Assembly: GCA_021613535.1 (NCBI GenBank)
Contig: CP075492.1
Span: 9,238,001 to 9,302,000, forward strand
Origin: Adineta vaga
Taxonomy: Eukaryota > Animalia > Rotifera
DNA: 64,000 nucleotides
Direction: 5' to 3'
In this document: in pieces, positions 22,592 to 25,937 of the stretch
Layout: every line of letters starts with the position of its first letter
How positions within the stretch are numbered: the stretch's first letter is position 1
Translations under genes and position numbers: made by a program
Notes under the pieces: model-generated
The model's database searches: none
Told to the model about the DNA's origin: nothing
Seen by the model: the letters and a program-made list of their open reading frames with translations, nothing else

Positions 22592-22847
22592 GATTATATG
22601 ATAAATGGGTAAATATGCCAAAAATATTTGATACTCTTGTCATGAGAATCAGAAAACCAATTGAATACTGAAGGTTAAGACAGAATTTTCATTGGTTGAA
22701 AATATTCACCAATGAAAAATATCGTATCAATGAAAACGGGAATCTTACTCAATATCTGTAAAAGATTGAGCAATAACCTGTGATGTTTTCTATTTAATAT
22801 AACGACAGTACTGGGAAATAAAGAAACGATTCTGCTTTATTTGAACA
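22592..22847. promoter_or_regulatory. Probable bidirectional promoter
   Basis: Only 256 bp separate the divergent ATGs at 22591 (-) and 22848 (+). Confidence 0.5.
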
Positions 22848-25514
22848 ATGTCAACACCTGTTGCTAAAAAAGCTAAAGTAGAAGACCTACCACTATGCCC
22901 CTATGGTATTCACTATCTTTATATATTTTTATATTTCTGTTACATTCCTATTATCTAGGCAGCAAATGTTATCGTAAAAATCCAGCTCATTTTAAAGAAT
23001 GTTCACATTCCGATCCTATTGCGAAAGTGATCACAACTGGTTTGCTACTATTATATTCATTCTGTTTAATTTTTATTTTAACTTTTTCTATAGATACAGA
23101 TAAAACATTACCAGTATGTCCTTTTGGTGCCACATGTTATAGAAAAAATCTTTTACATTTTGCACAATATACTCATCCATTTGATTTGTTAAATCCTGAT
23201 GTCGATAGTAGTGATGAAGAAGACGAAGAAGAAAAAAACCATCGGTCAGATAAAAGTAAAACAGTGATCAATGAAGGAAAAAAACGTAAACTAGAAATTG
23301 AAAAAGAAGAAGATGATGATGGCGATAAAACGGAAGAATATGATTCAGATGATGTGAGTTTATGATAATTGATTTTATTGGGATGTGTATATAATCTTAA
23401 TATTATAGGAAACTGTATATGATGTAAAATTAGAAAAAACATTTTCGAAAATGACAGACGATGAAAAACGTTTGATGATTGAAAGAGTAAGTATTGAATG
23501 AAAATAGAAATTTGATAAAAAAAACGAATTTTATTTCAGGCATTCGAATTAAAAGACAAATTACAAGAAAAGTTAAAAAAAACACGTGAAGAAGCAGAAA
23601 ATAGTAAAAAAGAAATCGAACAACTTCAAAGCAAGGTAAATTCATCCTCTTTCCATCGATTCGTACGAATGATAATAAAATCGTTTTCTTTCAGATTACT
23701 GAAGGAATATTATTAATGGAAGGTGAAACTGAAGTTCTTAAAGGTACTGAAGTCAAATATTTCGAATTATTTCCAGAACGAAATTACAAACAAGGTAATG
23801 AAATGACTATTTTTTCGATTGCAATTAAAAATGATTGAATTATGAAACAGGTTCAGCTGCTGAAGTGCATTTTCGTCTGGCCGAATCACAATTCTATCGT
23901 TTATTAAGTGGATATGCGACGTAATTACATTCAATTAAAAAAAAAGATTTCTTCGCAATGTTTTTAATATTCAGAGCACAAGTTAATAAAGTCGAATATG
24001 TTTGTAATCCAATTTTAATCGATAGATTCAAGTAGACACGAAAAAAATATTGTTTGTTTCAATTATATCTTCGTTATGTTTAGTAAAGCAAGAGAAGAAT
24101 TGAAGAAAAAACGTGGTGAACAATGTTCGTATCCAGTATTAGCTTTTCATGGAACAGCTGTGAAGAACATTCAACCAATATGTGAAAAAGGTTTTAAAGT
24201 ACCTGGTAAATGACGATTAAAAATATGTTTTTCAAATCGATGTGTAGAATCTTGTAGGACAAGCTGGATTTCAACATGCAACTGATAATGGTTTCTGGGG
24301 ACGAGGAACTTATTTTAGTGTAAGTTGTATTAGATGAGAAGAACTTTAGTTTTGATCTTTTTCATTCGAGTGATCTATTCATATTTTTTTATGTAGGAAT
24401 ATCCTAACTATTCGATGAGTTATATTAAAGGTGCTACAAAATTATTATTATGTCAAATATTACAAGGAAAGGTACAGAAACTAAAAACTAATGAGATATG
24501 AAATGATGGCTTCTTTTGTTGCAGATATTTCAATGTACGCAGCTCATTGATGGTGCTGATCTCCAAGATGTAAGAAACGATTGGAACTCCCTCTTCTAAA
24601 AGTATGATCAATGTTATTTAGGGTTTTGATTCGCATTGTTCACCTGACAAAAAAGAATTAATCATCTTTCGTAGTGATTATATTCTTCCTCAATACATCG
24701 TGCATTATAAGATCAACACTGGTGAATTTAAATATGCAGTATGTTGAACTAATTCTTGTTTCATTGATTTTATTTATCTGTACAGACTAGTCTTGCAACA
24801 AAAGAAGCACTCAAGAAAAAATTAGCCAAAATTGGAAAATTTTATAAAAAAGCAGTTGGAACAAAAGATCAAAAGTACATGTAAAAAGAATTCTTAATCA
24901 ATGGATTAATTCAAGGTCTGACCTCGGTCCCGTATCTTGATCTAACACTTAGATACGGGACCGAGGTCAGACTAAAGAAGTATCTATTTTTCTTCACAAT
25001 AACAATTCTCTTTAAAACAAGAGCTAGACAATACACATATCTCTCTCTGTTTTCGAAGGATATTTACTGGTTATAAATTTGCAATCATTGGTCAAATGAT
25101 TGATACACCATTAGCTATGGAAGCATTAATTAAACGATTTGGTGGACATGTTTGCAGTTAGTTCTTCTCTAGATAGAAATTTCATTCTTCATTTATTTTA
25201 AATATAGAGAATACAGTTCCATTTGGTACAATACCAATGTATACTAGTTTATTTGTCAATGGATATCCTGCAACTGTACCATTTGATGCACCTACGATAA
25301 TCATTTGTTCACTAGCTGAATATGAGGCAACAACGTCATCAACTGAACTACAAGGTTACAAAAATATGGGTGTAAGTATAAAATTTCCTTTGATTGATCA
25401 TATCGAATTTTTCTCCAATTGTTTCAGTATCAACAATTTTATCGCGAAGATTTTCTTTACGATTCAATTATTGAAGGTACAATCAAAACATTAAGTGATT
25501 ATCTACATGAATGA
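22848..25514 (+). CDS. PARP-family ADP-ribosyltransferase with two N-terminal PBZ zinc fingers and a C-terminal BRCT-like domain
   Basis: About 17 short exons. PBZ1 LCPYGSKCYRKNPAHFKECSH; PBZ2 VCPFGATCYRKNLLHFAQYTHP; acidic/NLS stretch; coiled coil; ART motifs LAFHGT, GFWGRGTYFS, YSMSY, LLLCQILQG, FDSH..PDKKELIIF...ILPQYIVHY; BRCT-like IFTGYKFAIIG...LIKRFGG...EDFLYDSIIEG; TGA 25512-25514. Confidence 0.85.
24916..24972. repeat. Perfect 22-bp-stem hairpin inside a PARP-gene intron
   Basis: gtctgacctcggtcccgtatct (24916-24937), 13-nt loop, agatacgggaccgaggtcagac (24951-24972). Confidence 0.9.
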
Positions 25515-25937
25515 ATGTTAATGTGATCTATTTTTAAAAATTGTTTTGAAATATAATTCAGTTTCATTTTATATCAAGAAATTAAAAACACGTCATAGAA
25601 GGATAATCTCACGCGAATATTTCAAGTCAAACACACACACACACACACACACACGCTCACACATGTATAAAGAAATAATAGGCACCTATGAACTTATATA
25701 TTGCACAATGCCCTTAAAGAAGAATAAAAGAATGAAAATCTGACGTTGAAAAAAAGCACGCATAAAATGTAAAGAGAATTGAAGCAAATAATATTTATCT
25801 TTTTTCACAAAACACTGTTATATAAAAGAAAACGAAAAAATTGACTTAAATAAAAAAGAAAACATCATAAAAATGATTTTGTGCAAATTAGAATATCGAC
25901 CGGTGATGTATGTATGTATGTAGAATTCGACTAAACA

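Follow-up and report, generated by a model that had tools for sequence, protein, structure and literature searches.

A transcribed Adineta vaga gene for a predicted PBZ–PARP–BRCT protein of an invertebrate ADP-ribosyltransferase family

Gene structure and transcription

The window, by which we mean the whole 64,000-nucleotide stretch of Adineta vaga DNA that was analyzed, contains an intact, transcribed gene that is expressed as one mRNA. A preliminary description of this DNA had read about 17 small exons at the locus and guessed at a bdelloid host; RNA-like contigs confirm 17 exons and 16 introns, and the host is indeed the bdelloid Adineta vaga. The coding sequence was delimited from the sequence reading, splice joints and protein identity.

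22768..25618, + strand: minimum transcribed span (RNA-like contigs X3, 22768-25526, and X1/X5, reaching 25618)
22848..25514, + strand: coding sequence (CDS), 17 exons, 1659 nt, product of 552 aa
22848-22905, 22959-23039, 23094-23353, 23409-23486, 23540-23635, 23695-23794, + strand: CDS exons 1-6
23851-23920, 23975-24031, 24084-24205, 24258-24319, 24397-24471, 24525-24569, + strand: CDS exons 7-12
24622-24738, 24786-24874, 25059-25156, 25208-25371, 25428-25514, + strand: CDS exons 13-17
24916..24972, no strand assigned: imperfect palindrome in intron 14 (long, 24875-25058), an opposite-strand self-match of 84% identity

The start codon is the ATG at 22848 and the TGA stop codon ends at 25514, with a 5' UTR from ~22768 and a 3' UTR to at least 25618, the contigs ending at a CA repeat. 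All introns are of the GT..AG type and all are seen in RNA-like contigs. When three RNA-like runs are mapped onto the locus, GT..AG joints are listed for 15 introns. The intron at 23487-23539 has no listed joint and appears in X1 as loose ends at 23487/23540; the length of contig X3 (22768-25526) fits its removal. Intron 15 lies at 25157-25207. The DNA-type run X10 shows no splice joints at the same locus. The single contig X3 covers the PBZ exons through the last exon, so that the PBZ and PARP exons belong to one gene, as had been proposed, and a fused-gene artefact is ruled out because all domains fall within one RNA-like contig. The palindrome of intron 14 was considered as a MITE and rejected, as no second copy is present anywhere in the genome.

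The spliced translation is exactly database entry P0196, the NCBI "hypothetical protein I4U23_013696 [Adineta vaga]", and this entry was used for the full-length protein analyses. Its features are placed on the window as follows.

22890..23011, + strand: PBZ finger 1 (aa 15-37), split by intron 1
23111..23179, + strand: PBZ finger 2 (aa 53-75)
23183..23447, + strand: D/E-rich tract, predicted disordered and bearing KKRK (aa 77-146), from the end of exon 3 into exon 4
23457..23700, + strand: long helix, putative coiled coil (aa 150-193, 44 residues), exons 4-6, from AlphaFold2
23713..24732, + strand: PARP-type ADP-ribosyltransferase (ART) domain (aa ~198-405), exons 6-13, from Pfam PF00644, Foldseek and profile search
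24148-24150, 24311-24313 and 24655-24657, + strand: codons of the triad residues H289, Y326 and E380
24786..24872, + strand: basic helical linker (aa 408-436)
24873..25502, + strand: predicted BRCT domain (aa 437-549), end of exon 14 to exon 17

PBZ fingers, acidic tract and long helix

The N-terminal fingers had been described as a tandem, APLF-like PBZ pair, and this reading holds: the full-length protein matches PF10283 at 2.9e-22 with 78.7 bits against a cut-off of 22.7, and both fingers exceed the Pfam gathering score even in an exon-by-exon scan (3.7e-7 for finger 1 from exon 2 alone, 4.3e-12 for finger 2). The pair aligns to both fingers of APLF (PBZ1-PBZ2) at 5e-12, with the Cys/His ligands and the Tyr/Arg positions retained. 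The key residues are C17, Y19, C23, Y24, R25, H30 and H36 in finger 1, which are kept in 41-43 of 44 homologues, and C55, F57, C61, Y62, R63, H68 and H74 in finger 2, whose Cys and His residues are kept in all 44. Both fingers thus present the C-x5-C-x6-H-x5-H ligands together with the Tyr/Arg residues that contact ADP-ribose (residue roles as given in Hecox-Lea & Mark Welch 2018), and PAR binding is predicted.

The D/E-rich tract with its KKRK patch was likewise correctly noted in the preliminary description. Across aa 77-146, 28 of the 70 residues are D/E and 12 are K/R; the tract has a pLDDT below 50 in AlphaFold2, consistent with predicted disorder, and its sequence is poorly conserved among homologues in the family alignment. 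The coiled coil described downstream corresponds to the modelled helix at aa 150-193, which has a heptad pattern with an a/d hydrophobic fraction of 0.62; 51 of 5000 shuffles attain this value, and 43 homologues show a similar one. The full-length AlphaFold2 model has a low pTM (0.45), which permits no inference on inter-domain contacts.

The ADP-ribosyltransferase domain

The ART fold with its HGT motif, YFS-type Tyr and KELIIF Glu is recovered in the full-length protein and its model. P0196 matches PF00644 with 40.3 bits (cut-off 26.7, E 3.2e-10), the match being fragmentary (7.4e-4) in the exon-by-exon scan, and Foldseek retrieves tankyrase, PARP13 and PARP12 at E ~1e-12 with probability 1.00 and target TM of 0.7-0.83. 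In the AlphaFold2 model, the pLDDT across most of aa 250-400 is ~85-93, apart from local dips, and aa 198-245 form a family-specific, highly conserved N-terminal segment of the domain. The triad residues lie in the motifs HGT (H289), TYFS (Y326) and KELIIF (E380). Residues H289, G290, T291, Y326, S328 and Y337 are invariant in 44/44 homologues across phyla and E380 is present in 43/44. With a mean column identity of 73% in the family alignment, this is the best-conserved part of the protein, which indicates strong purifying selection on what is predicted to be an active enzyme.

In an ART profile search, the closest solved catalytic domains are those of PARP13 and PARP12 (3e-12 to 5e-12), followed by PARP10 (1e-9), and no PARP1-3 chain is found at E < 0.001; the domain lies nearest to PARP12/13 and the tankyrases rather than to PARP1-3. 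The residue aligned with E380, at position three of the triad, is Val in PARP13 and Ile in PARP12. In agreement with the earlier statement that WGR, regulatory and PARP1-type zinc-finger domains are missing, the full-length Pfam scan gives no match at E <= 1 for PF05406, PF02877 or PF00645. Ankyrin, SAM, WWE, macro and RRM domains were not found in the same scan, and the sole CCCH-finger match (PF25585) is weak, sub-threshold and overlaps the PBZ fingers.

The preliminary description had taken the H-Y-E triad as that of a polymerizing enzyme. The triad itself is present, but it is no proof of polymerization, and the domain most resembles those of PARP12/13 and the tankyrases. H-Y-E is required yet insufficient for polymer synthesis: PARP3 and PARP4 carry the triad yet are mono-transferases. 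PARP12 and PARP10 are also mono-transferases and PARP13 is inactive, while the tankyrases polymerize without a regulatory domain. The function of Clade-3-like PARPs often concerns RNA or antiviral defense rather than repair.

Linker and predicted C-terminal BRCT domain

The ART domain is followed by a basic linker with 9 K/R versus 2 D/E and modelled helices at 413-431, and then by a tail that had been called BRCT-like. Profile and model evidence support its identification as a BRCT domain. The A. vaga protein itself matches BRCT_2 at 4.7e-5, covering positions 1-85 of the 86 in the profile, and its 24.0 bits remain slightly below the 27.3 cut-off because of an insertion of ~25 aa; the exon-by-exon scan gives a BRCT hint only (0.15). 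In the alignment, this insertion is bdelloid-specific and lies at ~aa 470-495, between helix alpha1 and the next core strand, and its residues 473-491 have a pLDDT below 50. The orthologues of Ptychodera, Mercenaria and Seison pass PF00533, and a family profile of the tail best matches the PARP1 BRCT (5.9e-13), with the BRCTs of TopBP1 and REV1 also among the closest. The AlphaFold2 model of the tail has a mean pLDDT of 80 (~90 in the core), and its best 50 Foldseek matches are nearly all BRCT domains (BRCA1, PTIP, REV1, MDC1, PARP4, PARP1), with a best E of 8e-5. Distant orthologues run against the window by tblastn gave no BRCT match, and support for the domain comes from profile and predicted fold instead. 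Mean column identity in the BRCT is 29%. By eye, an Ile precedes the conserved BRCT Gly, which would argue against a phosphopeptide pocket.

Distribution of the family and a retained ohnolog

The preliminary description had stated that no vertebrate PARP has this domain order. The architecture is no unique or rotifer-specific invention: by sequence, the gene belongs to a conserved, biochemically uncharacterized invertebrate PARP family, and Perina et al. 2014 had earlier pointed out PBZ and PARP combined in a metazoan, a lancelet. We find 82 relatives sharing the Pfam architecture, from hemichordates to rotifers. The layout is present in hemichordates, lancelets, molluscs, one nemertean, one annelid, Seison and every bdelloid sampled, and all of these proteins are unnamed. 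Identity of the A. vaga protein to members from hemichordates, lancelets and molluscs is 39-48% across >90% of its length, and 55-67% in the ART domain. A representative search with the open frame of exon 2, intron 2 and exon 3 returned mostly short eukaryotic exon fragments, together with three full-length PBZ-PARP proteins (P0025, P0045 and P0074).

The bdelloid sequences form one clade inside the PBZ-PARP-BRCT family. An ohnolog of the gene is retained on chromosome 6 (C6 ~7.16 Mb; the window locus is at C3 ~9.26 Mb), and both ohnolog lineages are found in Adineta and Rotaria.

Induction by radiation

A role in DNA damage, as had been suggested for this protein, gains support from the radiation induction published for A. 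vaga PBZ-PARP genes. The supplementary tables of Moris et al. 2024 contain two A. vaga genes with PF00644 and PF10283 that are over-expressed 2.5 h after X-rays, with log2FC of 6.74 (mean count 7941) and 4.64 (mean count 1239). In that study the two genes rise in parallel with Ku80, APLF, ligase E and Pol beta, and the literature also records their induction by desiccation. Both genes have the same Lottia and Branchiostoma proteins as best matches, and the induced pair is most likely the window gene and its chromosome-6 ohnolog. Gene-number interpolation (PCNA positions) is the one line by which we tentatively equate the window locus with FUN_012246 rather than FUN_026804; BLAST to Lottia cannot separate the two (411 vs 412 bits), and the IDs neighboring them in the supplement are all "unknown". 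The gene is not discussed in the bdelloid repair literature examined, nor in a 2026 in-situ preprint. The gene, its relatives and its induction are already public in databases and supplementary tables, and no new type of system is involved.

Proposed function

Overall, what the preliminary description had observed is confirmed, and its interpretation is partly supported. We consider it reasonably probable that the protein, with its order of two PBZ fingers, acidic tract, coiled coil, ART domain, linker and BRCT, is a nuclear ADP-ribosyltransferase recruited by PAR at DNA damage; its mode of recruitment, its targets and its mono- or poly-ADP-ribose product are inferred. Upon DNA damage, transcription of the gene would be induced. 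The tandem PBZ, in which the ADP-ribose-contact residues of APLF are kept, would bind PAR made at breaks by DNA-dependent PARPs and so bring the enzyme there, where helix 150-193 may dimerize the protein and the PARP1-like BRCT with the basic linker would provide a tether to DNA, chromatin or a BRCT partner. With its catalytic residues complete, the ART domain would then modify the enzyme itself or nearby targets with ADP-ribose. Feed-forward amplification, and a histone-chaperone role of the acidic tract like that in APLF, can be suggested only tentatively.

In the nearest competing reading, a PAR-recruited mono-ADP-ribosyltransferase of the PARP3/PARP10 type marks proteins or nucleic-acid ends near PAR with no feed-forward synthesis. 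We regard this as possible but doubtful. The nearest profiles (PARP13 and PARP12 at 3e-12 to 5e-12, PARP10 at 1e-9) all belong to non-polymerizing proteins, the helical regulatory domain and WGR are absent, and PARP3/PARP4 are known to make only mono-ADP-ribose despite H-Y-E. However, the catalytic Glu that is lost in vertebrate Clade-3 mono-transferases is retained in 43/44 homologues, and the tankyrases, which polymerize and have no regulatory domain, match structurally just as well. Another idea is that of a mainly non-catalytic scaffold, in which PBZ as PAR reader and BRCT as adaptor assemble repair factors and ART activity is dispensable. Tandem PBZ and BRCT domains are typical of repair scaffolds (APLF, XRCC1, the PARP1 BRCT), but a column identity of 73% in the ART domain, with all NAD+-site residues invariant, versus 29% in the BRCT is hard to explain without catalysis, and we judge this idea very improbable.

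We hold it to be equally far-fetched that the protein acts outside DNA repair, in stress, RNA or antiviral functions like the vertebrate Clade-3 PARPs, with radiation induction as part of a general stress response. The proximity of the ART domain to PARP12/PARP13 would fit such a role, as would the co-induction of many stress genes by desiccation and radiation (Moris et al.). Yet the protein has no CCCH, WWE, macro or RRM domain, its BRCT is closest to those of PARP1, TopBP1 and REV1, PBZ occurs chiefly in DNA-damage-response proteins (Perina et al. 2014), and the induction runs parallel to that of the repair genes named above.

An extension of the PAR-recruited ADP-ribosyltransferase that we consider unlikely, and put forward as speculation, is that the family represents an ancestral animal "second-wave" PARP, which PAR would recruit through PBZ and which would extend, branch or re-seed chains on chromatin with its intact H-Y-E site, and which would have been lost in the sampled vertebrates, arthropods and nematodes. 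If true, it would be a real reader-writer amplifier, whose duplication and very strong radiation induction in bdelloids would substantially help their extreme tolerance of DNA breakage.

The layout of an APLF-type PBZ pair, a tankyrase/PARP12-like ART domain with Glu and a C-terminal PARP1-like BRCT is not known to have been studied biochemically; conservation is high all the way from hemichordates to rotifers, and both A. vaga copies appear among the strongly radiation-induced repair genes. The protein is therefore a clonable candidate for asking how PAR signalling propagates without DNA sensing of the PARP1 type, and which induced factors underlie the radiation and desiccation tolerance of bdelloids.

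Comparison with known systems

PARPs with their own ADP-ribose reader are already known, among them macro-domain PARPs, WWE PARPs and the PBZ-PARPs of Dictyostelium. Perina et al. 2014, citing Ahel et al. 2008, mention PBZ-bearing PARPs in Dictyostelium, Entamoeba and Capsaspora, which on this account resemble the A. vaga protein in joining a PBZ reader and a PARP writer in one polypeptide. A Capsaspora relative found in our search has 992 aa, aligns to only 47% of the query and shows no PBZ among its precomputed Pfam domains.

Human APLF (2KQB-2KQE, 2KUO) has two PBZ fingers with equal spacing and equal Cys/His/Tyr/Arg positions, and its acidic tract and basic patch also have counterparts in the A. 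vaga protein. Unlike APLF, the latter has no FHA match and no detected Ku-binding motif, and its acidic tract adjoins the fingers and precedes an enzyme domain, whereas APLF lacks ART and BRCT domains. PARP12/PARP13 (ZAP) and tankyrase 1/2 share with it an ART fold lacking a helical regulatory domain. H-Y-E is common to it and the tankyrases, while PARP12/PARP13 have Ile/Val at the third position. Identity to all of these catalytic domains is only ~20%, and the CCCH/WWE domains of PARP12/13 and the ankyrin/SAM domains of the tankyrases are missing. PARP1 (BRCT 2COK, 2LE0, 7SCY) is similar in having a single BRCT in a damage-linked ADP-ribosyltransferase, but its BRCT is N-terminal to the ART domain rather than C-terminal, and its zinc fingers, WGR and regulatory domain have no counterpart here.

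The closest comparison is with the unnamed invertebrate PBZ-PARP-BRCT proteins, such as Ptychodera flava XP_070565989.1, Mercenaria XP_045169852.2, Lottia LOTGIDRAFT_171695 and those of Branchiostoma, which have the same domain order, ~500-580 aa, and the same H-Y-E and PBZ residues; a Crassostrea member, A0A8B8BUY0, is labelled "Poly [ADP-ribose] polymerase". The bdelloid copies differ from the other invertebrate members in their ~25-aa BRCT insertion and in being duplicated as ohnologs.

Gene structure and transcript

The window gene (22848-25514, + strand) consists of AT-rich eukaryotic DNA without a visible long ORF. Reading the short open pieces in the three forward frames and joining them through GT..AG sites gives 17 exons, and for the splice check, three small RNA-like contig runs and one DNA-like run were aligned over 22700-25700. 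GT..AG joints are present in the RNA-like contigs at 15 listed introns (47-184 nt). At the intron 23487-23539, run X1 has loose ends (23487/23540), and the length of the contig in run X3 is consistent with removal of this intron. The DNA-like run, X10, has no splice joint over 22700-25700. The roughly 17 small exons, nearly hidden in the ORF track, that the preliminary description had proposed are thus borne out by both the frames and the RNA-like joints.

A single X3 contig (record 11, 1751 nt) corresponds to 22768-25526: it begins upstream of the ATG and takes in the exons of the PBZ fingers, the PARP domain, and the tail. The fingers and the PARP domain, which might have been encoded by separate genes, are therefore carried by one mRNA. 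The coding sequence of 1659 nt encodes 552 aa, and in a local comparison the spliced translation is exactly identical to P0196, annotated at NCBI as "hypothetical protein I4U23_013696 [Adineta vaga]". [quoted passage not shown]

Introns in the 3' part of the gene (window positions)
24875-25058, + strand: intron 14, the gene's only long intron, missing from all RNA-like contigs
25157-25207, + strand: intron 15, from the RNA-like contigs

Several smaller features accompany the gene. Intron 14 contains an imperfect palindrome of ~57 nt (24916-24972, arms 84% complementary), for which a repeated MITE was ruled out, as the genome holds no second copy. Intron 2 (23040-23093) is 54 nt long, in frame, and stop-free, such that the frame 22877-23362 is open across it; its retention would add 18 hydrophobic residues between the PBZ fingers, and no such form was seen in the contigs. 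The 5' UTR has a short uORF (22783-22797; ATG, three sense codons, and TAA) within the RNA-like contig coverage. Directly 3' of the gene lies a (CA)n microsatellite (25628-25655) at which every aligned contig stops, and one X1 contig has an extra 992 nt past it, possibly 3' UTR or a neighbouring transcript. X10 differs from the window at ~30 single bases in exons and introns (22892-25232), with those at 23557, 23563, and 23572 recurring in the RNA-like runs; these look like allelic or strain variation and not editing.

PBZ fingers and ART catalytic domain

With the full P0196 as query, Pfam recovers two PBZ fingers (2.9e-22, 78.7 bits versus a cut-off of 22.7) and a PARP catalytic domain (3.2e-10, 40.3 bits versus 26.7). 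The tandem, APLF-like character read from the sequence holds: among solved structures, human APLF's tandem PBZ gives the best match overall (5e-12), with both fingers and their spacing aligned. Across 44 homologues, the zinc ligands and the ADP-ribose-contact positions (Y19, Y24, R25; F57, Y62, R63) are invariant or nearly so. The contact tyrosines and arginines of APLF are kept with the exception of one Tyr-to-Phe change (F57), which occurs in other metazoan PBZ (Hecox-Lea and Mark Welch).

Conservation within the protein is highest in the ART, where column identity averages 73% across phyla, and a segment specific to the family and nearly invariant (aa 198-245) lies N-terminal to it. AlphaFold2 confidence is high across most of aa 250-400, and Foldseek matches the model to tankyrase, PARP13, and PARP12 (E about 1e-12). 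By family profile, the nearest ARTs are PARP13 and PARP12 (3e-12 to 5e-12), followed by tankyrases (4e-10) and PARP10 (1e-9), with no match to PARP1-3 at E < 0.001. H289, G290, T291, Y326, S328, and Y337 are invariant among the 44 homologues, and E380, where PARP13 instead has Val and PARP12 has Ile, is found in 43, the lone exception being a Capitella sequence that looks like a faulty gene model. As H289 and Y326 are invariant and the nearly invariant E380 aligns with the third triad position, the proposed H-Y-E reading (HGT, the YFS tyrosine, and the KELIIF glutamate) is correct. These columns show that the NAD+ site is complete and strongly constrained by purifying selection. No WGR, PARP regulatory domain, or PARP1-type zinc finger, all three described as missing in the preliminary reading, and no FHA, WWE, macro, ankyrin, or SAM domain was matched by Pfam in P0196.

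BRCT tail and inter-domain regions

Regions of P0196 outside the PBZ fingers and ART
aa 77-146: acidic disordered tract (28/70 D/E, with KKRK), between PBZ2 and the ART
aa 150-193: helix of 44 residues with a heptad hydrophobic pattern, between PBZ2 and the ART
directly before the BRCT: basic helical linker (9/29 K/R)
aa 437-549: BRCT tail, from orthologue Pfam matches, family profile, and predicted fold

The BRCT-like tail had been the least certain claim of the preliminary description. In P0196, BRCT_2 scores just below threshold (4.7e-5, 24.0 bits versus 27.3) over the whole profile length, a shortfall attributable to a ~25-residue insertion in the bdelloid copies (roughly aa 470-495, with low confidence at 473-491). 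Orthologues of other phyla score above the Pfam threshold, and a profile built from 40 family tails matches the PARP1 BRCT (5.9e-13), then TopBP1, REV1, and bacterial ligase BRCTs. Modelled separately with AlphaFold2, the A. vaga tail has a mean pLDDT of 80 (core about 90), and its Foldseek matches are almost exclusively BRCT domains. Together, the orthologue matches, profile, and fold settle its identity, and the profile indicates a relationship to the PARP1 BRCT. The acidic tract with its basic patch is present as described, and the suggested coiled coil corresponds to the 44-residue helix, whose heptad pattern was equalled in 51 of 5000 shuffles.

Family distribution and the ohnolog pair

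When the PBZ exons were searched exhaustively, full-length PBZ-PBZ-PARP-BRCT proteins of Ptychodera (a hemichordate) and Mercenaria (a clam) were recovered, as was a PBZ-PBZ-PARP protein of the stramenopile Cantina. Queried with the Ptychodera protein, a word-based search yielded 82 relatives; their sources are hemichordates, lancelets, many gastropods and bivalves, a chiton, a nemertean, Capitella, sea anemones, corals, Macrostomum, Seison, and every sampled bdelloid genus, nearly all named "uncharacterized protein" or, automatically, "Poly [ADP-ribose] polymerase". None of the 82 is from a vertebrate, arthropod, or nematode, an absence within the reach of the word search and not proof. Perina et al. 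2014 (PMC4245714) mention, in one sentence, that Entamoeba, Capsaspora, and a lancelet have PBZ together with a PARP catalytic domain. Bdelloid repair papers take up PBZ only for ligase E/K and APLF. Our literature search found no description of the full architecture or of any activity of the family. The architecture given in the preliminary description stands as anatomy and not as a singular invention, the same layout occurring in other phyla: it is a conserved invertebrate PARP subfamily, already catalogued and unstudied.

Catalytic domains of P0205, P0207, P0209-P0213, P0215, P0216, P0228, and P0229 are 34-57% identical to the Ptychodera query. These ARTs occur without PBZ (corals, scallop, and oyster) and joined to a macro, WWE, or cold-shock domain; the ART has thus been recombined with several different readers.

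The A. vaga genome comprises six contigs (100.8 Mb), with the window on contig 3. A genome DNA search yields a second copy:

C6:7157386-7160014: ohnolog on contig 6, ~67% DNA identity

Its protein (P0182, I4U23_029477) is ~70% identical to the window product. In the family tree, the bdelloids are a single clade (SH-aLRT 99). Within it, the contig 6 copy belongs to a well-supported lineage (96) and the window copy to a second group, and Adineta and Rotaria sequences are present in both. This topology fits an old ohnolog pair kept since before the Adineta/Rotaria split. Genome-wide, we observe at least 29 PBZ (PF10283) matches at about 17 loci, frequently paired and with every one of the six contigs represented, a repertoire far larger than the three mammalian PBZ proteins of Perina et al. 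2014 (PMC4245714).

Radiation induction

Two A. vaga genes that combine PF00644 and PF10283 are given in the supplementary tables of Moris et al. 2024 (PMC10809525), where each is classed "DNA repair, PARP": FUN_026804 (mean count 7941, log2 fold change 6.74, FDR 0, 2.5 h after X-rays) and FUN_012246 (mean count 1239, log2 fold change 4.64). The Lottia and Branchiostoma proteins that they match best are also members of our family list. Because the DNA search finds only two such loci and the family search only two A. vaga proteins, these two genes very probably correspond to the window gene and its ohnolog. BLAST scores and neighbouring gene IDs do not discriminate which of the two is the window gene. 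PCNA (FUN_027556) is present at C6:4.36 Mb and at C3:11.3 Mb; if gene numbers follow contigs, FUN_026804 is likely the copy at C6:7.16 Mb and FUN_012246 that at C3:9.26 Mb. A later in-situ study chose other PARPs, and Nicolas et al. 2023 report 'alpha-protein kinase vwka' as over-represented after irradiation.

Proposed mechanism

The earlier idea of a PAR-recruited amplifier or scaffold is reasonable. The PBZ pair would bring the enzyme to PAR made by DNA-dependent PARPs, the helix at 150-193 may pair two molecules, and the ART would modify itself or neighbouring proteins. Binding of DNA, nucleosomes, or a partner may fall to the BRCT and basic linker; nucleic-acid or PAR binding is reported for the BRCTs of PARP1, PARP4, and fungal PARPs. 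Conservation does not back a histone-chaperone role of the APLF kind for the acidic tract, which is speculative.

The PBZ-PARP-BRCT gene is a good and clearly delimited candidate for experiments on PAR signalling and on bdelloid radiation tolerance. As to its product, H-Y-E alone cannot tell polymer from mono-ADP-ribose; PARP3 and PARP4 are H-Y-E mono-transferases. Compared with known systems, the putative PAR-reader fingers keep, by alignment, the contact residues of APLF, and the nearest solved relatives of the ART include mono-transferases as well as the polymerising tankyrases.
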